From Phallusia mammillata (Eukaryota): DNA of 64,000 nt. Under the pieces are notes generated by a model. It made no database searches, was not told the origin of the DNA, and worked only from the letters and a program-made list of their open reading frames with translations. The translations under genes were made by a program, and so were the position numbers. The DNA is taken from NCBI GenBank assembly GCA_965637545.1, contig OZ281495.1:23002001-23066000 (forward strand), given 5' to 3'. Within the stretch, counting starts at the first letter, position 1. Each line of letters starts with the position of its first letter. This document shows, piece after piece, positions 407 to 24,596 of this stretch.

Positions 407-3400
407 CTGTGTGGCAATGAAGGCGGAATTTTTCAATGTCACAGGTACTGCTGAGGATGGAACGTCACGTACAGCTTTGCTTGGGGATTTGAGAAACGCG
501 CAGTTCCTCACGTAATTCGCGTTAATGTAGGTCGAGAGTGCGTCGTCCTCTTCATCACCGGGACAGCTTTCCAAAACCACTCGGCTATGTTCGTCTGTAG
601 AAACATATTAAGGGTTAAAATAATTTTTGTTAGAGGACATCTAAATTGAAACTGATAGTCGCTGGCTATAAACAAGTTTTAGTGAGGAGTTGGTAAACTT
701 TTATTTTTGTTTAACAACGCGAAAAATGACTATTAGGTGCAGAGGGAGAAAAGTAAAACAAAGTAATCTAACCAAAAGTTATGAAATACACTGCACTGAT
801 ATATTATAGAACTTTAAGAGCTTTTTATTTGCTCAAAATAAACGTTTAACATTTTGTTCGTCTGTGGGTCAACTGAGCACAGTTTCAAATGCCTATTTGT
901 CATGCATGATATTTGTTTTCATTTGTTTCCTTTTGGTGCGCGGTACTTTCGATGATACTATTATTTCCCGTAAAATCCCTTGGTTAACAGCAGTGTCGCG
1001 TTTTCGGTATTTATTCACACATTATAAATAACCACGCCTATAGTGTGATTCAAACTCTCAACGCCAACGTCAGTTCTTCCCAATAGGGAAAGTCCCGCGT
1101 GGTCGTGACGTACTTGGCAAAATTGTGCGGTAGCGATTCTTAGTGCCGTGGCCGGCGATGCTAAAGTGTTTCTCCGAAGGATGGTTCATAGGTATTTCCC
1201 AGAATTCCTTCTGCAGTCGCGTAAGGTCACACGCCTTGTTCTGAATCTCGTCCGGCAGAAGCGGAGATGAGGCTTGTTGGAGATAGGTCAATGGCTTGCT
1301 GCAGAACAAAAGCAACGTATTTTGATCACACCCATAAAAAACTTAATCACAATATTGATTTTGCACTCAAAATGCATATTTCTGCATGTTTACATTCAAA
1401 AAAACAGCCGATCATTTAAAACCATTTTAAGACAGTATATTGCTCCCATACAAATGGACTTCAAAATATTTTTAATTACAATAAAATCAACCTTTCAGGG
1501 CTCGTTTGGCAAGTATATACAAGGTTAATATTATGCCTGACAGCAACAGCTTATAGGCTACATATTGCAAGAAATTGCTACCTGTTTTAGTAATTTTAAA
1601 TTTTAGTTACTTTTGAGTATACTTACGGTGATTTTGAGGTAGCAGGATTGGAAGAATTGGATTTCTCGCCAGCTCTTAGTGAAATTGTCAACGCAACATT
1701 TGATCCTCTTCTGCTCAACAAAATAAAAGTGTTAACATTATCAGTAAACATGTGCAAGTTTTTAAACAGAAAATCTTATAGTATGCACCTATGAATTAGG
1801 CTAAAACCAAGATGACTCAATTTGTAGGTAAACATGTCATCTTTTCACAAATATATGTTGAATTGGATAATTGTTAATGTTGTTTGACTTGTTTAAACTT
1901 ATTTTATAAGAAACTATGTATTAAACTGCAGTTATTCATCACAACCTTAGCTGAGTTGCTCCTTTTGAAAAAAAAACATGCATACAAAAGAAACAGCATC
2001 AATTATATAACTTATTTTGCAATGATCTAAACTGCCTCACTAAATTTACGACACTATCAATATTAGAAAACAAATGTTACCTTTCTAAGAGCCCTGGTTT
2101 GGTCCTGGACTTCATACTTTTACACAACAGGGGAGCAATTTTGTCCTCTGCTTCAATAGCTGCATTACACACGCTTCTATAATCGCTGTCTCCAAGCACA
2201 TAGTCTGCAAACAATGAAAATATGCATAATTAGGTCATTTTTAGTGCATAGCCTTTGTTTAATACTATACAATCACAGGCAATCAAAGTTGTTAAAGGCT
2301 GTAATATTTTTACATTACAAGACAATTTAAAACCGTGCTTGTGATACAGAATCAGTACAAGACAAAAGCAAATGGAAACCAACAGGGTGAGTGTATTTCG
2401 TATTTGGGCGCGCGAGTTACCGCAGCACGATACCTGTCACTGCTTCTAAATAATTTACGCGGCGACCTGGTTCAGTGGCGGGTGAAAACCACGAGTGCGA
2501 TAACCAGCATGCAAATCGTTCCAACTACACCCCGACTTCCGCCAGCTCGTTACTAATCGGATTCAACGCGAAAGGCGCACTTCCAGCGGCGATGCAATTA
2601 CGGATGATTCGCTCGCCGTCGTACGCAGCAGCATCTGGGCCAGCACTGGGCGGTTGGAGTCCAGCGCTTGAGCCTTACACGCCGCGTTGATGACAGGAAA
2701 GAGTGACGTGCTAGCAGCGCACTGCTGACTCAACCCAGCCCAAGCGAAAATAAATTCTGCACAACGCGCCTCTCTTACAGTTAGATAGGCAACGTATACT
2801 CTTACTGACGCATGACGCCATACCTTGCAGAATGCTATTTATACCACCCACTTGCGTACAGGTCCATTAATTGAGAACCACTGAACGCCTAAATGCTTCC
2901 CAATAAATTTGAATAGATAGCTATATATCAACCCGTTAATGGCCGTTTTACGCTTTCATGCAAACCACACAGTGCGTAACTCTCCCAGCCACATTTTCAC
3001 CTCTGGTTGCCTGGCCTTACAAACACAGCGTACGTATAAACAGCAGTGAAGGGAAACATGGCTCGATGTGCCTGGAAATCCTATCTTAAAACTGACTACT
3101 TGTTCCTCGCTTAACTTCCTATTGAATGCTACACAACCTCTGCTAACCAAAAGCAACTATTACTTACCCACTATAATACAAATCAAAATCTGGAAGCTAT
3201 AGGCAGCAGCTAAAATCGCTTGGCCATATTGACTGAATGTCACGAAGCCATTGACAAGACAGACAGCTATCTGCGTCCGTATTCTGCTGACACCTGTCAA
3301 GAATACTGGCGTACAATTGGCACGATCGATCGGATGTGTTTCGTCATCTGACGCAAACAGCCTTATGGCCTCGTTTCGTTCTGTGGTGAAACAAGTGCTG

Positions 3401-6400
3401 TATTCTGCCTGTCCGCGCTTTTACTGTCCATAAATGCCGCCCCAACCTACTATGTGGGCCCGTGAGTCGTTCGAGCCTCTATAAATACGCTTATACGCGC
3501 AGTGATGCGAGCTAAAGGCGCCACACGACTGACTGCTGTCTCATGGACGCTTCACCCCTGGGTTTAAAAACTGACTGAAATTTTTTTTCCCACAAAAAAC
3601 ATTTAAAACTGAACATACATGCAAATCGCACCCCCGCTGCTACACGTGCGAAAAGGCTCAAGTTGTTCCTGCCCGTGCTGACATGCCGAAGCTGTTCTGC
3701 TTATCGCGGATATGGCGCAAGCGCGTTTAGTACGTCACCTTTCTTTTTATTTAAATGGTGACAATACCCGTTGCTATGACTACCGCTGGTGCGTTTACGT
3801 GTGCGTATTACAGTTTATCCGACGATTGTGTGTCACCAACACAGGATGTGCACTTGCTGTATTGCATTTACAGCGTATACCATCTGTTAGCAAATACTAA
3901 GAGCGTAAGATACGTCGCCATTGCGCAAATCTTACGCAATACAGCAAACACTTTGAATATAAGGAAGGTTAAATATAAACCTTACAAGTTGTTTTACCTG
4001 GATCAGGAGTGTATGGTAGGCGCTTCAAGGCAGGCACCGTCGTGTTTTGAAAGGCCACGGATGCGGCCAAAAACTTTAGGGTTTTCGGTCGTTCGCACAC
4101 CGAATTGTCGAGACTTCTGAAAGAATTGTTCAGCGGCTTCAACGCGTGAATGATGACGTCTTGTTTCGAGTCACGTGGACTCGGAGGCGACGGCGGCGGC
4201 GAGTGACTTGAATTGGTAAAAGTGATGTTTTCAGCAGAGTGTGCGCTTCTAAACAAAAAGTAACAACAATTAAGGCATGTCGATGACGGTGCATAGTAAG
4301 TGTGCAACGTAGCTTTATTATAGGAACGTAAGCTTTATTATAGGTCAGCAGGTTTAGAGTGGTCAAAGTGCAAATTATGTCCAACCAAGGTGCAAGGCAA
4401 GACTTTGTTTTGACACAAAAGAGATTCTACTGTAGCACATGGTTTACTACAGCTATCAAGAATGCTTAAACGTTTCCGTAAACGTGAAGGCGTCATTCGA
4501 TAACAAATTACACTGTGCGCAAACTTATTGTTATCTGAGCATCTACCGTCGTCCTTGGTTTCACTTACCTCGTGGACGAATCGATTTCGGTTTCTTGCAC
4601 GATCTGCATGTTGGATTTATTGCAAATTATCGGTTTTATTCCACTTAACGGCACGCTTTCCTCATACTGTGCTTCGTCAACAGTTGGCGTCAGGTTGCTA
4701 CTTCCCACACTATTGTAATATTTCCAAGTTCTATGTGCGCTAAACGTCTGCAAAGAGATAAATAAGATGATAAATGTTATCAAAGAGCTGCATTGCTCCT
4801 TACACCATTATCTATTACGTTCCAAATTTATATCAGCGTTAATTTTAACGCCAGTAGTCATTTAAGGAACTCTAATATGGTAAGCTAAGATGACAAACAT
4901 TCATATGGGATAAGCCCTAAAGCTTTCATGCAATGGGCTTAGCGTACTATGATAACTATTTATTCATAAATTTGCCTAATGTATCCAACACTGCTGCATA
5001 AAATCACTTGAACTGGACGTGCTTCAGCAAACAACCTCGCTTGGAATGGACAAACTTGCAACAACCACAATGTTTACAGCTTAACTGCTACAGTGACCAT
5101 TCTTTTAACAACGCGCGAAGTCAGCTTGGCCAATGCGCAAATCAACACCAGCTTTAAACTTGATACAACACAAATACGCATTGTGCAGTTATGTGAAGCC
5201 TTAATAAGCTGCCTCTTTTCCAGTGGTTTTCAACCTCGACCCTTTACAGTTATCCGATTACTCTTCAACCCTTTCGAGAATCTTAAATTCAAAAACGAGT
5301 CTTTATGGAAACGGAAAACTCAACTGTTTTTCTTATTAAATGCTAGATTTTGTGTTTTCACTTTCCTGTAGTCATGAATTAATGAACCGTCGCAGTCCTT
5401 TGCTTCACTTGTAAGGAGAATTCAATAATAAGGAAAGATTTACTACGTTAACTGCTATTTTTTAGATCTCACGACGTCACAACAATTGCTCTACGAAGAC
5501 AGAGATTATATTAGCTCCGAATTTACTAGAAACACAAGAAAATTTACTATCCAGCTATAAACGCACTGCTGGTCCTCTGTTTTGAAATGCGGTACACAAA
5601 CAAACCACGCAAACTGCCAGAACCGACGCCCACCACAAAGTTGTAGGTTTGTGGCCGAGCAGCTGCCACCAGAAAAGCTGCTAAGAAGACAAACAACGCG
5701 ATGTAAGGCCCCTGACGCGTTGTAAACAGCAGAAAAACGAGTGGTTTACGTGGGCAGTTAAGTCGCATGTTATCAATACAAAGCTGCGAAAACTTACAAC
5801 ATCGTATTTGCACAAGGTACGGCAACTATTCTTCGCGCAATCGTTGAATCCCGCGCGACAAGCAATGAAAGGCCACGACTGATAAGTTCTACTTGCACTT
5901 CTTCTAAAACTTCCTAACACAGATACACATTTCTAAGCTACAATATTGCCTTGGTGCGAGTAACGCTGTTTGCTTGATCTGTAACTTCGGAACAATGTCC
6001 TTGCTTGACTAGTTGGCTGGGAATATAGGAAACTACGTGTTATGTCCGACCAAACAAGCAACTAATACGATCAATCACTTTAACTCGTGCTAACTGCTGA
6101 CCGCATGAAGTGTCCACTTGAGAAAATTGGCGACCTTAGGATCAAAATTGGCTGCTTGGGAGCGGTCCTCGCCTCAAAGTGCTTGCGTATTAATTAGGGT
6201 GAGAACGCGAGGCGGTGCTTCCGCCTTGACAGCAGGTGGTGACTGTGGCGACCAGATCAGCGGGTGACTGTGCACCAGAGATCGATAAATCCGGGCGCAG
6301 ACATAATTCCCAATTTCCTTTGCTTGTGGTGGTTTACTCAAAGAGAAACTAAAGGCCTTGTTTGTACTGAAAGATTTTTATTACGAGGGTTTAAATAAAA

Positions 6401-9400
6401 CCTGAATATTATACAGACCATAAAAATCTGAAATACATTTTTTTATGCCAACATGACGACAAACAAATGTCGCGCTTGATGAAATACCGGAGACAATACG
6501 GGTCGATATAATGAACGAGATTCACCGCAAACATGTTTTCGACATTTGAGCGCCAGTCATACCTGTCTTTCGGTTAAGAATCTACGACAAGGAAACGAGT
6601 CGTGAGCATATCCCGTGGCACACGTTTATGACAACTCTAAACGTGAATAGAAACTGCTACCTGAACCCTTGAAAGGCAAATCTACTCAACTGACAGCATA
6701 CCATAGGTTTCTGCCACTATGGTTCACTGTACCCTCTGTGTATGCTGGTGCACCTCTCCAACTGCGGGAAGACATGCAACTTAAACTGCACTCAACAAAT
6801 CTAATAGCTCGCTTCCAGCCGTTGCATTCACAATCATAAGTCAACCAAAACAATCGACTCCACTTTCACTTCAGCAATATAAGCACAAAACGGTTAGAGA
6901 ACAATAGATGGCGTCACGCTTCCGGTCACGTGAGAGCCAGCGCTGCGGTGAAAAAAGGGGTCGACCGCTGCCATTTCCTGCATAATTCAGAAGGGGGAGA
7001 AATGCAAATCCATTTCTCGTCGCGACGGAAGCTCATTTTACAATGGACTCGGCGGCCGTAAGCGGCGATTACTGTGGAGTGCGATCGGAAGCCCGGAATA
7101 ATGGAGTAATTAATTGGGTTGTGAGCTTGCAAGGAAAAAGCGGGACGGGCTCGAGGCTGCCGAGGACGGCGTCGTTTGAAGGGCGAAATATCCGCCTGCC
7201 GCGTAATTGACACATCCAGTAAAGTGTCAAGCGACAGAGGCAATACAGTAAACACGATTAAATAAACTACATCCGCAAACGGCGGTTTGAACTTTCAACG
7301 ACTGTTGTTGGGTGCAATAGGCAATGTTGTTTTGCATGTACTGCAGACACAAGCGCAGATATATTATGTGTACATAAACCTTAAAAAATCATTTAATAGC
7401 CATCATAGGGGTAAACGTCCGGTCGATAAAATATAGCGCACAAAAATATCATTCTGAAATATATAATGTTGGCTAAAAACACAGCGACCAGGTGTATACA
7501 TCTCATAACCCCACCTAGCGAGCAAAATTAACAAAAACTGTTCGTGGAGAATGATTTAACTCAAAATATAAATACTTTACTCTGGAACCAATCCAAAATG
7601 TAACCAAAAATCCCACACACTTTGTTACCGAATGAAGTCAGCCAACAGACTTCATTTGAGACTGCGACCCGACGGTGAAAGTTTTAAACCAACAATGTAT
7701 TATAGAAATACAACGTCACATGCACAATATACAACACTAACAAGTTGAAATAACCAACCGAAACTCCTCAATAAAGTAATAAAACAAAAATAAGATGCAA
7801 ATACTTAAAAGCAAAAAAAAGCATGTGCTACTAAAATGCCTTTTTGTTTGGTGTGGACTTTGCAACACTAGCAATTGTACAATAATGGATTATATTCTAA
7901 ACCCGGGTGGGGTTTTAGCTTGCATAGTGGAATGAATTGCCAATTACAATTGTAAAACTATGCACAAATTTTCATTTAAAACTCAAGAACAGCCTCTAAG
8001 AAAAGCAAACAAATAACCGATTGCAAGCGAATAAAAGTTTCAATTCAGCATACAAAGCATTGGCTGCAAACAAACACAAAACACTGCGCCAAACCTTCGA
8101 ACAAAAACAATTACCTTTGGACAAAGCGGTAATCACCAAACAAAAAAGAGTTTGTGCGCCACAATTCAAAGAAAACTGCTATTGGCCTTACTGCCTTGTT
8201 TGATGCTTGCAGCCCTTTTTGACAAACGCACGCCAGGGGCAAGGTGCTGCTGGACTTCGCAGTTGCAAAATTACCGACTAATTACAGTGACAAGCTGTCA
8301 CAGTTTGCGCGACAAAGCAAGACTAATTTAGTTGAGCAAAACGACTTCCTGTAAAATTATGAGGCATTTAAATTGACGCTAATACACCTGGCATTTATTT
8401 TAAGCGCCGTAACGATGACAAACGGTTATGGCATTCTGGTTACAATTTTTTTTAAAGCGGTACAGTTATTTCTGTAAAGGGTTAAACCACAGACTAACGA
8501 TTTTTCGACGAATTCCTCCAGTAACAATTCAAAACATTTTCATTCCTTCCTATTATACTGCATAGTAGATGCTAACCCGTGCTAAGGTCGTTGAAAATGA
8601 GGCCTTTCATCAAATTCACAGGTCATATTCCCAGAGCTAAAGTATCTACTTCCAAATCACATTTGAAAAGGAAATTCCTCCCCTGAAGTTTTAAAATTTC
8701 TCCTGGTTGGGAACCTCTGAGTTATAGTATCCAGCTTGTATACTGGGTACAAATACATTAAAGTACTACAGACAAACGATCTATTTTGCAAATCTTTTTA
8801 TATAACATATGATTGTGAAAGGTACCTCAGGGTCAAACGGACAGTGAGCTTCTTTGCAAAAACCCAACTAGGGCTTAAAATAGCTTCGAAAACTTTTCCT
8901 GGCGACACCAAATCATGACCGAATGCTTTTGTACACAACTGTGTCGTCATGTATTTTTTACGCTTAAATGAATGTGACACACGGAACGCTTTGGGCAGTT
9001 TCGCGCCGAGTTGAAGCGAGTATACCACAAACACAGAAATAGAAAATGCAACTTTCCGAATAGAACATCAACAAAGTTGGTGCTAAGGGTAATTTGCCGA
9101 AACTGTATGAACGCATTGCATACGACTTTCGCAAAGTCACGTGACACAAAATTTGACTGCATACTGTGACCTTCTTTTAAAGCCATTTTAATTTGTCATA
9201 AATCAGGCTCTTTCAGGTGGTTTTAAAACCATATAATACAAAAAAACTAACATTACAAAATATCTAATTTTCACACCACATGATTTTAACGTCTTGAAAC
9301 TGTGAAAAGAACAGCAAAATGCGAAACTGGTCTTTTATGATCCGTTCCATGGATGCAGGAAAACTACCCTAGACTAAATGTGGAGAAATCGCATTGAACA

Positions 9401-15543: not shown

Positions 15544-17548
15544 TGTTGTGTGCCAAATGTACAGTTGCTTCAGTCATAAATTAACAGTGACACACAAAGA
15601 TTAAACCTATAAACATTAACTCTTCACACATAAGAACAATATTTCTTATCAGCGTAACACAGAAACAGTGAAAATTAATGCAACAGCTTGTTGGATTGCA
15701 TATATTTGATTACTATGAACCTTACAACACAATTGATCAACTGTTTTCTGCCATAAAGGTACATTTCTTAATGTCTTAAAGTGGCATCTTAACTGATATT
15801 AGGTACTGAGTAGTTTTATTTTACTAGTCTACACCAAGCCACAATGGTGACATTTTAACAGTAATCTTTTAACCAAACAAAAACTTTAAATCTGGTATTC
15901 TGGTTTAACACAACTGAAAAACAAAACTGTGATTAATGTTTTAGCAATTTCACAATACCATTTTCCAACCAACATTTTTTCATACATTTATCAGGCACTA
16001 AACTAAAAACTGTTCTTAACTGGGCCCTACCATGCAAAATTTGTACATTTTTGATTGCCACACCAATTTACAACTTGCAATATTTTTAAACTGACACATA
16101 CAAAAATACGTTTTAGTTTTCTGAAAAATTTGAGTAATTGCTGGTATATATTTTTATCATTTTGCTAAACTAGCCATGTTTTGAAATGTCTTGCAACTGC
16201 AATATTTTGCTGTCAAAATCATTATTCACAAATAACACAAACAAGATGCAAACCAGCAAGATATCTTTAATCATTAAAATTGATATTAGCAGCCATGTCA
16301 TCGCACTGGCTGCAGCCCTGACGTGACAAAAGTCAACTAGATTTTGATTGGGCAAGTGTTTTGACTTTTGAGCTTTTTACGTTTTGCCCATTGAACAAAA
16401 TTGGATAACGTTTCACACACATTCAAAACAACTTGGTTTTAGGTCTCGGCCATTGTGTCATGAATCTGTGTGAAACTAAGGGGGATTTTCCGCCAAGTCT
16501 GTTTTCGAGAACTCTCAAAAATTATAAATTAAAACAGGCCTGTTCGACAACGTTTAAAACTATTAGTTTATTATTATTAGCAAGGATGGTATTATTTACC
16601 TCTGCCTTTAGATAACACAGCAGAAACTAAACATAGCTTTTTTGCAAAACAACTTTCGATGACAACATAGCCTACGCCTCTCCTCAATTAGCCTACCCAG
16701 ATGCAACGTTTACATGCCCTCTTTTTTGCATTTACTCTTTGAACTATTCGCAAAGTATACTAAAACAACTATTAATTCGTGCAGCCCACCAAACGTGTAC
16801 TTGTTGTGTTGATGCACAACAACAATTTTATAATGTTGGATAAGAACGGCAAACATTTTAAGGAAACAAGTTTAGGCCTACCTTTGAAACTTATCTTTCC
16901 TAATCCACAAAACGCAGTTCGCGCGTACATTATCAGCAAAACAGACCCTACGAATGCAAATTGGAGTTATTTTTCAACGATTGTTGTGAGACTAATAGCG
17001 TAATTCTACTCGTGACAAATGTTTCCCGTAATTTCTATTTCCCAACAAGGAACTAACTTCTCTTCACCGAAGGAAGTCCCGAGATGATAAATCGTGTAAG
17101 TCGTTTTCTGGCGGGTAAAATTGTCTGCGCTGGAATAAGGTGGTGTAATCTCGAAATGATTGCGCTGTTTTCTCAAAACGTTATTCTCACATTAACAGAA
17201 AAACTAAGATCGCGTCACTTGCAATGGGAAACTAAATGTTCGTTCCCATCAGAAGTATAAAAAATTACTACAATATCCCTTCTACTACTTTTAAACAAAC
17301 ACTTGGGTTACAAAAATGTATTTCAAACTGTCCAAAAAGAGGCAAATAACATTCAGGCACAATAATAGTGTGGAAAACATAGTGTCTGTTCTTGTGTGGC
17401 ATATATGTTTAGAAGCCTAGTTTTAATTTGCATTGGTCGCAAGTTTGCTATAACATGGTGTGTTGCGCAAACTTTCGCAAAATTATCATATGCATACAAA
17501 AACAATAGGAACTTGAAGAAATTGCAGTATAGTGGGAAAGTCTCAAAA

Positions 17549-20500
17549 TTATGTGAGAGGTAAAAACACAGCCATGATGACCAACGCGGCAATAGTTATG
17601 AGCAAAAATATACTGGTAACTGCTATAGGAATGCGATAGCGATCGGCAGTTTGTACGATTTTTCTGTAAGAGCCACGTTGCTTAACGATGCTAAAGTCCA
17701 AACCAGCTTCAATATCAGGTTCAGCTTGGGCACTTTTGGAAAGTAAGTCTGGTGACAGCACTAATTCATGCTGCTTGTAGCTATGACTCTGAATAGTTGC
17801 TTGACTGCCTTGCTCAACTTCACCATAACTTCCCAAACTTGTGTGACGGACGTGAACTTGCTGTGACTTTACTTTTATGACAGCCACGGATGAAAGTTTA
17901 CTTGATGCTGATGTCTTTTTACTCGTAGCCTGGGAAATTTCTGGGTCTGTTGATGTGCAAACTTTGTCCATATTGTCAATAATTTTCGAGATGTCCGCTG
18001 CGAGGGTCTTTTCAGTGGAAGCAAAATGTTCTCTTTGATTTTTGTGGTCATTTGCGAGTTCAGAAGGTGTCCTAGTTTTGTCATGGCTAGGTTGTGATTG
18101 GCCAGTTTTTGTCTGGCCTTTAAGGGATGAGCGAGACGATGTCGAAGATGATCTGCGGCGCAAATGGTGAGGAGTCTGCAACGAAACCATTCGCAGAGGT
18201 GTAATCACTTGATCAGTGACAGAAACGCTTTCTCTGAAGCTTTTTCGTGACAAGCTTGGCGATGAAGACGGGGTTGAGGATAAGGTAGCTTTTGTCATGA
18301 GCTGCGGGCTGCCACGGCTAATTCCCACGGTAGGCGGGAAGTTAATCATCACTTCGTCACTGCAATGCATATTAGTGGATGCCGCTGCAACCACATCGCT
18401 GTCGCTCAAATCAAGCTCCTTGAATAGTTTTCTGTTCAACGAAGTTGGTTGCTGGTCAATAACACCGCAGGATGTGGGAGAAACGTAGTCCTTGTAGAAG
18501 GTAAACGGTTTCAATACTTTTACTTTGGTACCAGAAGATGGATATTCAAAGGTAGACTGCTGTGTGTACGAGCCGAATGTGATGTTTTCGTATGAAGATT
18601 CAACAGGTTGGTTGCTCGCATCGCCAGGACTTGCAAATGAAAGTGCGACATCCGACCTTTCAAGACGAGAAACAGGGACTTCTGTGTTTATCTTTTGGCT
18701 GACTCTGTCTTGTCTTGTATCCGTTTCCACTTGGTCCGTATCCTCAGCCGCCCCTTCGTCCAGTTCGTCGACGAACGCTGTATGATACAGTAGCGAACCA
18801 ATGTCGTCATCAGCAGTGACGTCATATGCCGTGTAATATTCGTTTTCGCTGGTCGTGTAACTTTCGGTACCCGTTGATTCGCGACTGTTAGCTGTAAAAA
18901 ATGACGGAATGTGTTAAATACATTGTATATCTTTACCTGAATTTAGAAATCAAAAATAGTTTTTTTTTTAGTTTTTTTTTTCCACGGGGTTCGAACCCAG
19001 GACTCTCCCGGGGACGAATCCCGAATCCCGATCAGTTTTTTTTATGTCTGTATATGGGTCAGGCGCGCCAGACCGTTCGGCCAAGTTCCAGTTTTGCGAA
19101 TTGAACTCTGTCATTGAGCTTTGCTGCCTCATGTGGTTATTTCTATACAACCAAAGTTGCCTGTTAGGCCTTTGTCTTGTGCCCTTTGTTAAGCAATAGT
19201 GTTGTTAAGTTCAGACAAACACGTATTATCCTGACAAATAATATTGTGACAATGTCCTAACTGAAAAAACTTGAACTTGGGAGTAGGCAAGGAGTAGACT
19301 GAAAACATAACCAAAATTTACCGTTCAAATCTGATAAACTGGCATGCGAGTCATCCATTGACAGCTTTGTTTTTCTGACTCTTTTTCCATCTTTCTTTGT
19401 GTCGTCCAATCGCTTTTTTACCGGCGTCTGATCTAAAGTATCGACGACCACCATATCACCTATCTGGAAAACAATTGTAATTGCTGATAAATATTACACA
19501 TTATTAACTGAATTTTCTATAGTTTTCTTAATTATGTTTTTAGACAAAAGTTTTGAGCTATTTTACCTCCGTCAATTTCACTTTTTTATATCCAGCGACT
19601 CGTACACCGAGCCGTTTGCGTGGCTTTTTGAAAACCAGCGAAAAATGCTTGTACACCATTTTAACTTGTAACACTTAACTCAACACTGTAATACAATGGG
19701 AACTATTTCAAATTAACCCTAGTCTAAGATTTGCATAGCTTTTGTACCTCTTCGGTGACGACCTTCTTTCTTTTTCGCTCGTCTGGTACTTGGTCGATCA
19801 CAACCATATCTTCCTAGAATGAGAAACAATAGATAAATGAATTGTGTCACCCCAGGCGTTCTGCAGCAATCGAACCTCGCCAACATGCAAATCGCCTTTA
19901 TCGTAGATAACATCTTTTCAATGCGTGCATGGTTTACAGTTAATAACAAAAACAGTCTAGCGGCAAATGGACTTCAAAAACACAAACAAAAGCCAAGCGA
20001 AAAAAATCGAAAAAGCAACGTATCATGAAAAACAAACTGTTCCAGCCAAACAACAAAAAACAAACAAATTTTCTTTTTTTTCTTTCTTGTTTTTAAGTCC
20101 AAATTCGTTAGCAATGGACGTCTTAAGTTGTTTATGGCGTTGGACAAAAATTAGCACTATAAGCACGAAATTCATTATTATATTATTTGCATGTGCCCTA
20201 TATTTTACGTTTTAGTTCAGTTAAAAGTGTTTGCATATTGTTAGATAATATAAACCACTGGTAACAAACATCTTAAAGCGCGCATCGCGCTATCAGGAAG
20301 GATAACAGTCAAAAGGTTAGACACATAATTAAATATCACAAAATAGCTGTACAGCCAAATACATACCTGCTCTTGCATAGAAACGTTTCCCAACCTTTCC
20401 TCTAACAAATGCGTCCTTTTTTGGTTGCTTTTCATTTTCCCTAAATTATATGAATTGTACTGTATTTCCATTTTGCAATGTTTACTTCAATACCAAACGC

Positions 20501-21693
20501 AACTTACGCATTGTGGTGCTGTTTTTCTCGGGTAAGTCTTCAGGTGTTGTGCCACTCGATAGCGAAACGTCAACCTAATTAAATAATAAGTTTGTTATTT
20601 AGATAATATTTAGATTACAAGAAATATTGCACGATTTGTTGTTTTAAGAACTATAATCGGATAACGATTTGTTAACAGTCTGTAAACGGTGTCTTTAGAA
20701 GTGTAATCAGTTCCACCTGTTCAATACAGCTGCTTTTTACAAATATACGCAACGCTCTGTTTACGAAGTTGTTTGCTGCAAGGTAAGGTGCAACAGACTA
20801 TAATCACAATATAAGAAAAGTCGCCATTTTATATTACGTCAATTGAAAGTGAAAAAACACAAGTGTAATAGATTGTAGGAAATCTCCAACAGCGGCCGGC
20901 GGCGCAACGATTAATGTAAACATCCCATCTGAAGGTGAAAATTCCACGACCACGCAAAATCGAAATAAATATCAACAAATAAATACCAACCTGTGGCTGC
21001 TTGTCTGTTTCCTGCAACGTAGTAATCTTGATTGCAGTTTTGATCGCGGTACGTCTCCTGTGCACGAACAAGTTTTTACTGGTTTAGGATTTGTGTTTTA
21101 ATGCGTACTAATGTTTCAAACGTCTGAATTGTAGCCGCAATCCAGTTGTCTTCTTAAATATACTAAACACCAGAGCAGTTTTGAAAAAAGAAGTCTTCTT
21201 ATTTGCATGCGTAAGAATCAAGTTTGCTGATTATATTTCAGTGCACGTGCCATTATGCAAATGATAAGGGGAGAGCGCTTAATTGGCAAATAACAAGTGC
21301 CCCTACGATAAACTCTCATTTGGCAGACACGTGACCACGCATGCGCAGGTAACAATGATAGTTGTTTGCGGTCGGGCGGCTACTATCTCCGTTTTTCAGC
21401 GACCTATCAATGATACACATTGCGTATCTCTAATGACCCAGCGGGTACTGACGCCTTTTCTTGCTCACTGCTTAGATGTAAACATGTTTGTTTCAAAACC
21501 GTTACGTCCAACACAAAAATTTTAGCTTGTATTTTCAGACCAAGAAACGTTCTTGACAGAGACAAATGCTACATATAAGTTATACGTAAACTACACCAAA
21601 AACACAATTCTAATGTGTTGTGACACAAAATGTTATTTTGGTGATATATTACGTCAGCGAATAAACTTACCGTTCAAGAAATTTTTCATCCAT
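17549..21693 (-). CDS. Uncharacterised ~612-aa Ser/Thr/Lys-rich tail-anchored membrane protein
   Basis: Eight phase-consistent exons: 21693-21671, 21057-20991, 20574-20508, 20440-20367, 19813-19748, 19623-19567, 19463-19322, 18891-17549. In-frame TAA upstream of the ATG. C-terminal hydrophobic segment IPIAVTSIFLLITIAALVIMAVFLPLT-stop preceded by basic residues. Confidence 0.85.
18962..19090 (-). repeat. tRNA-derived SINE or tRNA pseudogene (Leu-like head) with A-rich tail
   Basis: Minus strand: A-box-like TGGCCGAACGGTCTGGCGCG, B-box GGGTTCGAACCCC, then A10-CT-A9 tract. Acceptor stem does not pair, so not a functional tRNA. Confidence 0.5.
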
Positions 21694-22379
21694 GTGTCTT
21701 TTTTTTTACTTTCTCATGCCCCTGTTAAACTGACAAGATCTCAAATGAGGTTACAATGTTCCCACAAAAATATCCTAGGAAATATTCGACTAAACTATTT
21801 CTCATCTCTGTCTAAAAAGCCGATTATTTGTTAGAACTTAGTGTTAATTATTTCTAAACTTGCTGCAATATACACTCAACCATTCGCAAAAGGGTTAAGC
21901 TGTAGGCCTATATGTTTTTATTTTGTTACACGATGAGCATTTACTTCTGCAATCGGGGATGATTCGAATATAGTGATTACTATTGGTGGTGGCTAAAATG
22001 TAGTTTAGTTTGGCTTAAGTAATTTATGCACTGAAGGGGAACGTTACTGCATGCATATGTGCGGCCACTGCTGTAAACGCCCCTTTTCCAATCTTGAAGA
22101 TATGTGAAGTCAATCAAACTTTAAATGTAGAATCTCTAATCTACATTACTTCAAAGTTTAAACAAATATGTTTGGGGACGTTACTGTAACCTAGTAGGCT
22201 GTAGCTATAGTACTGATGTCGAAATTAGTGATCCTATTCTTTGCAACGTAAAATCGAAAAAAAAACGCTTTGGTGCAGTGTGTTAGAGCGGTGCTAGAAG
22301 AACAAGTTTGGAAAAATTAGGTTCGATCTATAACTTTTGTTTGTGCGATACAAAAAATTAAAACTCACTTTGATGACTC

Positions 22380-22935
22380 GAGCTTACGCAACCAATTTGG
22401 AAATGACTTGCAAACGTTACTCCAAGTTTTGCTTAGTGAAAAATCGCCGAGCACACCCACTAACACTCATCTTTTACATTTAAAACTTTGTTATTGTTAA
22501 TCAGGTTTCTTCAATAAAACAACAACATATTTCAGCTGGCGAACTGTGCCTGGTCTAGCTTCACTTGCGTTACAGAAAACTACCCACTCTCTTATCTTGA
22601 CTATTAGAGCGTGTCAAACCATGTTTTTAGCAAGTTGCCAGTGGTATGCAGCGAAACAATGTTGCAACGGTTTTTGATTGGCCCCTTTTTGTAAGCGTGT
22701 TCGCTTTACAATACGAAGCCAAGGCTATAGGTATTGTAAAATATGATAATCCATTCTTTTGTTGCCGAATGCCAATAGCGAAGTTCGAACTTGTTTAAGT
22801 TTGTTTGTTGCTAATTGGAGAAGGTCCGTAAAACATCTCACATGACAAAAGTGTAGCCTACAACGGATAACACTTGATTTGATATCCAATTTGATCGGAT
22901 AAACTACTCACGGACGGTCTTTCCTGGCAACCCTG
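22380..22935. promoter_or_regulatory. Putative bidirectional promoter between the tail-anchored gene and CLAMP/SCAPER
   Basis: Divergent gene arrangement; outward-facing GTAAGC donors on minus (22387) and plus (22691); reverse CCAAT at 22677-22681; RFX X-box-like CTTTCCTGGCAAC at 22919-22931. Confidence 0.4.
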
Positions 22936-23079
22936 CGAAGAACATTATTGTTGGTTTCATCAATCTATTTATTGTTGTGGTATATATTTTTTGGTTTCAA
23001 ATAAATTTCTCTTTTCGCAAATAAATTTTGAAAATTAATTACCCAAACGTTCTGTATTAAAGCGTGGGAAAATCTTTGT

Positions 23080-23575
23080 GTGCCAACGGCCCCAAGAAAA
23101 TTTTTTTGTTTTGTTTTATTGCCCTCTCGTGGATTAAAGCACATAGCGACAGTTTTGCTAAAGCAAACTTCGGTTGAAAGTTATGAAAACGAATTTGATG
23201 TAAACAAGTCCAAACTTGAAGTATTTTATGTTGATAAAGCGCACCGAATGCATAATTTGGCAAGATAATTACGGCTGTTTAAGTGACGTGATTTATGAAT
23301 GTAGTTGCACCTGGCAATCGTCCATTGTGCCAGATTGGAAAGAATGGCCTGCGCGGAGGATTTATCCTCCGCGCAATATTTTATGCTTTCGTATAATTTT
23401 GTGTGTTCTATTAATCCGTACATATTAAACCAATTACAAGTTTGCTTGCGTAAAACTTTGGGTTCAAAAATCACACAGCTGATTGTGTCCAAATTTATAA
23501 GTAAGTTTGAATCGTTCAAAATTAAATAGGGTCTGTAGACTCTGCACCTGCTCGCTGCTCTGTAGTCTGTAAGAC
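23080..23575 (+). mobile_element. Decayed Penelope-like retroelement fragment (GIY-YIG endonuclease region)
   Basis: Broken frames give ...LSDVIYECSCTWQSSIV...ARRI and FKIK*GL*TLHLLAAL*S. These resemble, with the expected spacing, the PLE pattern SNVIYxFSCxCxSxYVGxTxxRLxxRI and FSILxxGxxxxHLxALEA as I recall it; multiple stops and frameshifts. Confidence 0.5.
23351..23374. repeat. Perfect GC-rich inverted repeat
   Basis: GCGCGGAGGAT-TT-ATCCTCCGCGC: 11-bp arms with a 2-nt spacer. Confidence 0.9.
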
Positions 23576-23696
23576 AATATTTTTGAAATTTATGTGTTTC
23601 AAATTTTTTTCCTTTATTAATTGTTTAATGAAACCCTAACATCAGAATTTCATTGATATTGTTGATGTTTCAGAAACTTATAGAACATGAATTAAA

Positions 23697-24596
23697 ATGG
23701 ATTGGGTAAGCTCAGCTGAAATACGTCACATTTCAAAACTTCCTAAATCCAAAGGCCAGTGTCTGTTAGGTCGACAACTAAGACTAAACATCTCTGATCT
23801 GGATGAAGATTTGCGGTCGGGTGCCTTACTTGACTATTATTATGATGTTATGCAATTTGTTGTTTCTCGTGGTATGCCTTGGCATGAAGTTGCCAATGCA
23901 ATGACATTCGCTAATGACTTTTTCAGAAGCTTCATTCACCTGACCCTCCCAAAGTCTTTGTGTGCATTACGAGAACTGAGTACACAGTATGTTGAGCAGC
24001 AGAAACTTGGGATTGAAAACATGAAAAAGCTTGCACAGTACTTTACAGTGCATGTGTTGGCACACCACAGCCTGTTTCAGTTTGTCTTTTCCAGGGAGCG
24101 TGACTGTAAGAGCAAACACATGTCTCTTGAGGTTCAAGTTTCTGATGCGCCGAAAGAGCTCAGTTTGTCCAAAACACTGAAACTGTGGGAATATGAAAAC
24201 AGAGTCCAAAAAGTCAAGTCAGAAGAGAACAGGAAACAGATGGAGCTTAATAAAGAAAGGGATTTGGCAAAGGAGAAAACCCAAGCCGTGGAAAAAGAAA
24301 TTGAACATCAGCTTGCGAAAAAAGAAGAAGTTGGGGAAGTGGATGTGAAATCAATGACTGAGTTTCTCTCTGCTTTGACTGCAGAGGAAGTGAATCTGGT
24401 CCATGATGAAGTTGGTTTTGAAATCAAGAAGATGAAGCAAGCTGCTGAGATTGCTGCTGATCTTCAAGCCATTCCCATTCCACCTGAACTGCAAAATAGC
24501 ACACAAAAGTTACCATCGAAAACTCAAATGAAGGTGAAATCATCTGCTGGATCTCGCAAGTCATCTGGCAAGGGGTCTCCAAGAAAAAAGAAGTAG
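23697..24596 (+). CDS. C8orf74: CLAMP-domain (C1a-32-like) protein, C8orf74-like; intronless CDS, 299 aa
   Basis: Single 299-aa ORF. Motifs RSGALLDYYYDVMQFVVSRGMPWHEV and YFTVHVLAHHSLFQFVF resemble C8orf74/CABCOCO1 (RRSILLDTLYESIIFAVGKGFPWVEV ... HYKLYQYVL); C-terminal coiled coil and basic tail. Confidence 0.75.
   Translation: MDWVSSAEIRHISKLPKSKGQCLLGRQLRLNISDLDEDLRSGALLDYYYDVMQFVVSRGMPWHEVANAMTFANDFFRSFIHLTLPKSLCALRELSTQYVEQQKLGIENMKKLAQYFTVHVLAHHSLFQFVFSRERDCKSKHMSLEVQVSDAPKELSLSKTLKLWEYENRVQKVKSEENRKQMELNKERDLAKEKTQAVEKEIEHQLAKKEEVGEVDVKSMTEFLSALTAEEVNLVHDEVGFEIKKMKQAAEIAADLQAIPIPPELQNSTQKLPSKTQMKVKSSAGSRKSSGKGSPRKKK

Follow-up and report, generated by a model that had tools for sequence, protein, structure and literature searches.

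A tail-anchored, disordered ascidian protein with a phospho-FFAT-like motif in Phallusia mammillata

Does a short, phosphorylatable motif make a disordered, tail-anchored protein of Phallusia mammillata a partner of VAP, and if so, does this protein tether two membranes? The question is raised by a locus on contig OZ281495.1 (assembly GCA_965637545.1), within a stretch of 64,000 nucleotides (positions 23,002,001 to 23,066,000 of the forward strand) that is referred to here as the window and to which the coordinates apply. A preliminary description, made from the letters alone, had placed on the minus strand a gene for an orphan protein of 612 amino acids, with EYYTAYD as a candidate FFAT motif of the phosphorylated class (phospho-FFAT), and had proposed a tether at membrane contacts. 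The explanation that appears best to us, with a probability of roughly 0.4, is tentative: the protein may be an ascidian-specific tail-anchored scaffold whose VAP-docking motif is gated by phosphorylation; a GAS2-type CH domain would have coupled its ancestor to actin, and Phallusia has a form without CH.

The gene product and its relatives

The spliced gene extends from 21163 to 17303 on the minus strand and consists of six exons separated by five GT-AG introns, as deduced from contigs of four RNA-like runs from four studies; all RNA evidence is at the level of contigs. The joined mRNA, of which 2111 nt are seen, holds a single long frame from the ATG at 20511 to the stop at 17551-17549. Its product of 542 amino acids matches at every residue a deposited protein of Phallusia mammillata (P0001), which carries the name of Ciona LOC100177226, and the exon sets derived from the RNA contigs and from this deposited protein agree. 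The strand and the end of the gene at 17549 had therefore been correctly described, while the proposed protein of 612 amino acids, starting at 21693, exceeds the supported one by 70 amino acids. This upstream start was rejected: no RNA contig is found upstream of exon 1 at 21234-22800, the furthest 5' end among the contigs being 21163, and the interval 21250-23600 is missing from the small RNA-like runs yet complete in two genomic runs, a contrast that also speaks for taking the small runs as transcriptomes.

The sole hydrophobic segment of the protein lies at about residues 511-540, at its extreme C-terminus. With the family alignment as input, AlphaFold2 gives 481 residues a predicted local distance difference test score (pLDDT) below 50; the confident parts are the terminal helix at 501-538, which reaches a pLDDT of 93 over residues 515-538, and a short helix at 392-404. 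The ESM Atlas model (pLDDT 0.31) agrees with disorder, so that hydropathy and both predictions bear out a disordered protein with one C-terminal transmembrane helix. Having neither a signal peptide nor another transmembrane segment, it is a tail-anchored protein, and the same holds for four orthologues. A Pfam scan of the Phallusia protein yielded nothing significant (matches to LUC7 and YwqH, far under their cut-offs, were rejected), and every feature or structure match in the ESM Atlas is below a useful score. The protein is a flexible cytosolic stalk of about 500 residues that bears several short conserved motifs and no folded domain.

It is not an orphan, as had been supposed. An exhaustive phmmer (HMMER) search over 1.84 billion representatives yielded five relatives with E <= 5e-4. 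Two are from Ciona: H2Z9P1 of C. savignyi and, in C. intestinalis, a fragment that clusters with the 619-aa LOC100177226 product. The others are the 791-aa Styela clava LOC120346308 and two last-exon open reading frames (ORFs), the first from a Sequence Read Archive (SRA) contig (L001), the second from metagenome contigs (L002/L003). The source species of L001 and L002 are taken to be ascidians. Overall identity to the Phallusia protein amounts to 23-37%, and the same search found no relative outside tunicates. Word-index protein searches returned only the query itself or a Ciona isoform, which says little because low-complexity words flooded the candidate lists. A metagenome scan for [TS]SENEY[YF]T revealed no species beyond those already known, and the literature search found no paper that mentions accessions of the family.

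The two contig relatives merit a separate remark. L001 holds a complete-looking, Styela-like orthologous gene at 1149-8193 on the plus strand, which a prokaryote-style gene caller had split into separate ORFs. The last coding region of L002 (9275-11005, plus strand) is broken into two ORFs by about 50 nt ending in ...tttcacag, probably a very short intron.

The EYYTAYD block and its likeness to phospho-FFAT motifs

EYYTAYD is encoded at 18841-18821 as residues 113-119, preceded by ESTGTESYTTSEN and followed by the acidic stretch VTADDD...VDELDEG, as had been described. It forms part of the most conserved block of the family, [TS]SENEY[YF]T[AT]x[DG], in which an alignment of six species shows no variation at S, E, N, E, Y and T; within the core, position 3 is Y or F, position 5 is A or T, and position 7 is D in five of the six. 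The block is kept while its flanks diverge, the opposite of the pattern that had been named as speaking against the motif. Moreover, its codons differ at third positions among Phallusia, L001 and L002 and the peptide remains unchanged, which argues for selection on the protein and not on DNA near a splice site. A profile search of the PDB with the block gave no match.

The sequence conforms to the phospho-FFAT core E-[FY]-[FY]-[ST]-[AC]-x-[DE], with S/T at position 4. It was scored with the penalty table of Mikitova and Levine 2012 (Table S2A), using 0 for Y at position 3, a value that is ambiguous in that table (0 or 0.5). The conventional penalty is 3.0 in Phallusia, 2.5 in Styela, 3.5 in both Ciona species, 3.0 in the L001 species and 4.0 in the L002 species; with phosphorylated T at position 4, these values become 2.0, 1.5, 2.5, 2.0 and 3.0, respectively. 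In the protein of every species, the site of EYYTAYD type is the best or joint-best. The upstream flank YTTSEN has a charge value of 2.5, for a penalty of 1, and would have a value of 4 with its S/T residues phosphorylated. CK2-type contexts are present at T116 (T-x-x-D) and at S110 (S-x-x-E). The region around the motif is unstructured, with residues 56-140 predicted as coil at pLDDT <50 by AlphaFold2, and from the topology of a tail anchor it would face the cytosol.

How such scores translate into binding can be judged from characterized motifs. In yeast, a total of 2 suboptimal elements leaves targeting hardly visible, and from about 2.5-3 upwards it disappears (Mikitova and Levine 2012). 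Phospho-FFATs with S/T at position 4, which is T in PTPIP51, bind VAP only when phosphorylated, and most of the tested carriers of such motifs are membrane-anchored, transmembrane proteins (PMC7705450).

It could be imagined that the match is due to chance, without any specific function, in a disordered protein rich in S, T and acidic residues. Low-complexity proteins of this kind often hold FFAT-like strings. However, the motif occupies the same position in six species across the split between Ciona and Phallusia-Styela, with diverged flanks and synonymous codon changes, and among 5000 composition-matched shuffles of the cytosolic part an equal site arises in 0.4% under phospho scoring (P ~0.004), or 3.7% under conventional scoring. 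Chance thus seems very improbable, being largely refuted by the conservation as read from the alignment. It is this conservation that carries the argument.

The block also invites comparison with a TRAF6-type site (P-x-E-x-x-aromatic), for which S-E-N-E-Y might stand in a disordered, tail-anchored signalling platform. Human MAVS is a disordered, tail-anchored protein of about 540 amino acids with a PEENEY TRAF6 site, encoded near SPEF1 on 20p13, and in size and architecture the Phallusia protein matches it. Such an adaptor is nevertheless hardly credible here: every species has T or S in place of the key proline, a CARD is lacking and the orthologues begin with a CH domain, the exhaustive phmmer search gave no sequence match to proteins of this kind, and the product of the neighbouring ORF at 23697-24596 belongs to no Pfam family at E <= 0.01. 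Readings of the block as a LIR, clathrin-box, B56, SH2 or ITSM motif were also set aside, by eye, as misfits to the consensus patterns.

Besides this block, other short motifs are conserved. The second Y-x-T-A-aromatic motif has the family form L[LM]YHTA[FY][VM][DE][DE] and lies 17 residues after the SENEY block. Two copies of an acidic-(V/I/M)3-D motif (EDMVVID and GDMVVVD) are found in the N-terminal part, with a third, related copy of the form E[IV]MI[ND][FY]PP; by eye, these motifs look like SUMO-interaction-type strands. The L002 orthologue reads EYYTAFG, has no second LYHTAF motif and contains two E[VI][MI]IDFPP copies.

Membrane anchor, CH domain and possible function

The anchors of five species have a best 21-residue grand average of hydropathy (GRAVY) of 2.6-3.0, and a tail of four residues follows the transmembrane segment, with a charge of 0 or -1; the exception to uncharged tails is that of L001, which contains one D. 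Insertion into the endoplasmic reticulum (ER) is favoured by a hydrophobic transmembrane domain with a low tail charge or no tail, while peroxisomes require a highly positive tail and mitochondria a less hydrophobic transmembrane domain (Costello et al. 2017; PMC5450235). With a GRAVY of 2.81 and the tail LPLT of charge 0, the Phallusia anchor fits the properties of ER-directed (GET/TRC40) tail anchors, and these parameters would place it in the ER rather than in mitochondria or peroxisomes. The uncharged span is long, at 25-29 residues. In other tail-anchored proteins, a long hydrophobic span favours leaving the ER, and a plasma-membrane destination, with contact in trans between ER and plasma membrane, is possible.

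These properties bear directly on the proposed tether. The membrane anchor and the FFAT-like motif are both present, but the anchor looks ER-type, that is, suited to VAP's own membrane, which makes a tethering function doubtful. The earlier comparison with ACBD5, PTPIP51 and MIGA2 does not carry over directly, since these proteins are anchored in other organelles.

The relatives have a further element. At the N-terminus of the Styela and Ciona proteins stands a CH domain (E 1.5e-11 and 2.9e-10 in Pfam, respectively), which in Ciona matches GAS2 best (PDB 9kbx, E 8e-19, versus 5e-5 for the next CH type). The CH exons of L001 precede its last exon by about 5 kb and share its strand, and L002 retains an exon encoding the end of a CH domain, RYGIEPPHSVKEE. 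In the ESM Atlas, the Styela protein (P0003) falls in generic CH clusters only. A GAS2-type CH domain is thus present in the Ciona, Styela and L001 orthologues and missing from the Phallusia window, in which tblastn and a three-species profile detected no CH exons on either strand. This window is free of assembly gaps, and no CH first exon was found within 43 kb upstream of the gene. Alternative first exons elsewhere are possible, since the frame of exon 2 stays open on the 5' side of the ATG and one Ciona model (P0004) lacks CH. On the minus strand at 19850-19731, another frame of exon 4 encodes ILGRYGCDRPST, in which RYGCDRPS is weakly like the CH-end sequence RYGIEPPSSV (tblastn E 2.4 and 16); this likeness was judged to be chance, as the RNA-supported frame encodes the conserved EDMVVID. 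CH-less forms of two Ciona models (P0002 and P0008) would begin with MGGKLSS... and ...MGTSFTK..., and the glycine that follows the initial methionine might be N-myristoylated.

On the basis of the CH domain, a function as a membrane-actin linker might be considered, similar to calmin, with the short motifs in a regulatory role and the Phallusia form as a truncated or derived protein that competes for membrane sites or partners. The combination of CH and tail anchor in Ciona, Styela and L001, the CH-end exon of L002, the CH-less Ciona model, and the description of calmin, with its CH and ER anchor, as an ER-actin tether (PMC10849733) are in its favour. It remains unlikely as the main function, because neither CH exons in the Phallusia window nor RNA upstream of exon 1 could be detected and the CH-less protein retains every short motif under selection. 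The short motifs must therefore matter without the CH domain.

According to the scaffold explanation, the hydrophobic anchor with its uncharged tail of four residues would be inserted into the ER via GET/TRC40, and its long span would be compatible with the protein moving on afterwards, to the plasma membrane for instance. Once the invariant T at position 4 (T-x-x-D, CK2-type) and S/T residues in the flank are phosphorylated, the SENE-Y-[YF]-T-[AT]-x-D block would dock into the MSP domain of VAP, joining the protein to VAP either in cis within the ER or in trans after leaving it. Since the Ciona, Styela and L001 proteins begin with a GAS2-type CH, the ancestral protein probably used this N-terminal domain to connect the membrane with actin; the Phallusia transcript, devoid of CH, would encode an adaptor for membrane and VAP only.

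Several points weigh against this explanation. Y at position 2 of the motif is suboptimal and costs 1 unit, the invariant S-E-N and the aromatic residue or histidine at position 6 are not required by FFAT rules, the second Y-x-T-A-aromatic copy is a poor FFAT with a score of 5-6, and the L002 orthologue, with G at position 7, is devoid of a second copy. Furthermore, FFAT-like matches are frequent: a phospho-FFAT scan gave scores below 3 to 2,079 of 20,373 human proteins (PMC7705450). The targeting rules for tail anchors derive from mammalian cells, and if the protein is ER-resident, VAP binding in cis would not join two organelles. Finally, the absence of CH in Phallusia is based on the 64-kb window and on contig-level RNA only.

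Conservation beyond the needs of an FFAT is a hint, at the level of sequence, that a different or additional partner is involved. The block may dock a partner other than VAP, such as a kinase or phosphatase (as a docking site), a PTB-type domain (N-x-x-Y/F) or another phospho-dependent reader; the recognized unit would then be the twice-repeated Y-x-T-A-aromatic with its S-E-N-E lead-in, and the FFAT likeness would be incidental. The extra invariant residues, the poor second copy and the high base rate of FFAT-like matches agree with such a partner, which is a real possibility, but none of the named motif classes considered, in an unscored comparison, matches as closely, in each of the six species the first copy ranks highest among FFAT-like sites, and two adjacent suboptimal FFAT-like motifs are already known in PTPIP51/RMDN3. 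As to the phospho-FFAT proposal of the preliminary description, what stands is a conserved, best-scoring motif in an unstructured cytosolic region; what speaks against it is that the conservation also covers residues an FFAT does not need.

Going beyond the scaffold with its VAP-docking motif, one may speculate about an ascidian-evolved membrane-cytoskeleton coupler in which the tail anchor, the GAS2-type CH and a phospho-switched VAP motif together anchor or move cortical ER or junctions between ER and plasma membrane, for example during egg reorganisation, with the CH-less Phallusia form uncoupled from actin. This is a decidedly improbable elaboration.

If the motif binds VAP, the protein would be a VAP client that is confined to one lineage, gated by phosphorylation and held in the membrane by a tail anchor, with an actin-binding CH domain added in most ascidians, and it would indicate that young, disordered, taxon-restricted proteins can gain FFAT-type contacts. 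If it does not, the repeated Y-x-T-A-aromatic element is a well-conserved short motif awaiting its partner. The combination of tail anchor, phospho-gated VAP motif and CH was found in no paper or annotated protein. The case would become more interesting if the anchor sits in a membrane other than the ER or if the coupling of CH and VAP is real, and ascidian eggs and embryos lend themselves to easy imaging and injection.

The coordinates of the gene and its motifs are collected in Table 1.

Table 1. Positions of exons, conserved motifs and membrane anchor in the window, and of the orthologous gene on contig L001.
Feature	Position	Strand	Remarks
Exon 1	20991..21163	-	Non-coding 5' untranslated region (UTR); in-frame stop, without ATG; RNA contigs and mRNA translation
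Exon 2	20508..20574	-	Start codon 20511-20509; frame open from first base of exon
Exon 3	20367..20440	-	Coding; RNA contigs
Exon 4	19748..19813	-	EDMVVID at 19813-19793, copy 1 of conserved acidic-VVID-type motif
Exon 5	19322..19463	-	GDMVVVD at 19460-19440, copy 2 of acidic-VVID-type motif
Exon 6	17303..18891	-	Coding up to stop 17551-17549, then 3' UTR of about 246 nt
TTSEN + EYYTAYD, residues 108-119	18821..18856	-	Phospho-FFAT-like core with S/T/E-rich upstream flank
LLYHTAFVDE, residues 129-138	18764..18793	-	Second Y-x-T-A-aromatic motif; conserved in 5/6 species
EVMINFPP, residues 275-282	18332..18355	-	Conserved; E, I, P, P invariant
DISKIIDNMDKV, residues 395-406	17960..17995	-	Conserved short helix DI..I[IN].M.D[IV]
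Tail-anchor transmembrane helix, residues 516-540	17558..17632	-	Best 21-aa GRAVY 2.81; uncharged tail LPLT
L001 gene	CH exons 1149-2604; small motif exons ~6037-6721; last exon 6913-8193	+	

Some features of the locus lie outside the argument. At position 17900, in the last exon, the plus strand of the genome has A, in agreement with three RNA-like runs; a fourth run (X1) shows G, probably an allele. Intron 5 contains a repeat (18970-19090, minus strand) in which a tRNA-like B-box (GGTTCGAACCC) precedes an A-run. The depth of RNA contigs rises sharply over this repeat and many contigs run out into unrelated sequence, as for a dispersed element resembling a short interspersed nuclear element; ARAGORN recognized no tRNA in it, and its 24-mer occurs once in the window. 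The ORF at 23697-24596, on the plus strand, is uninterrupted over 299 amino acids and lies about 2.5 kb upstream of the gene in divergent orientation. The RNA-like runs show no transcription of the spacer between them, at 21.2-23.6 kb, which may serve both as promoter region.

Comparison with known systems

In the exhaustive phmmer search, no sequence relatives of the disordered part were found among PTPIP51, ACBD5, calmin and GAS2, so that the comparison concerns architecture and motifs. Protrudin (ZFYVE27) is an ER-resident protein with hairpin membrane domains and a FYVE domain. It has no homology to the Phallusia protein, but its FFAT-like motif, EFKDA-E, binds VAP, which provides a precedent for VAP binding on the same membrane. 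GAS2 proteins pair CH with a microtubule-binding GAR domain and are not membrane-anchored. GAS2 and GAS2-like proteins share with the family the type of CH domain, that of the Ciona orthologue matching GAS2 best (9kbx); a Pfam scan detected no GAR domain in the family proteins.

Calmin (CLMN) resembles the Ciona and Styela orthologues in having an N-terminal CH, a long disordered middle part and a C-terminal ER anchor (PMC10849733). In contrast, its actin-binding domain is a tandem CH, while the ascidian proteins have a single CH of GAS2 type, and Phallusia none; outside the CH fold, there is no homology. ACBD5 combines a tail anchor with an FFAT-like motif, and its VAP binding is described as tuned by phosphorylation (PMC8759595). 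It differs in its acyl-CoA-binding domain and in a tail of charge +4.9, which directs it to peroxisomes, whereas in the Phallusia protein the tail is uncharged and folded domains are absent. PTPIP51/RMDN3 has its transmembrane segment at the N-terminus, in mitochondria, as well as a TPR domain, unlike the C-terminal, ER-type anchor of Phallusia. Nevertheless, both proteins combine a membrane anchor and a disordered stretch with two adjacent suboptimal FFAT-like motifs, and in PTPIP51/RMDN3 one of these, with T at position 4, requires phosphorylation to bind VAP.

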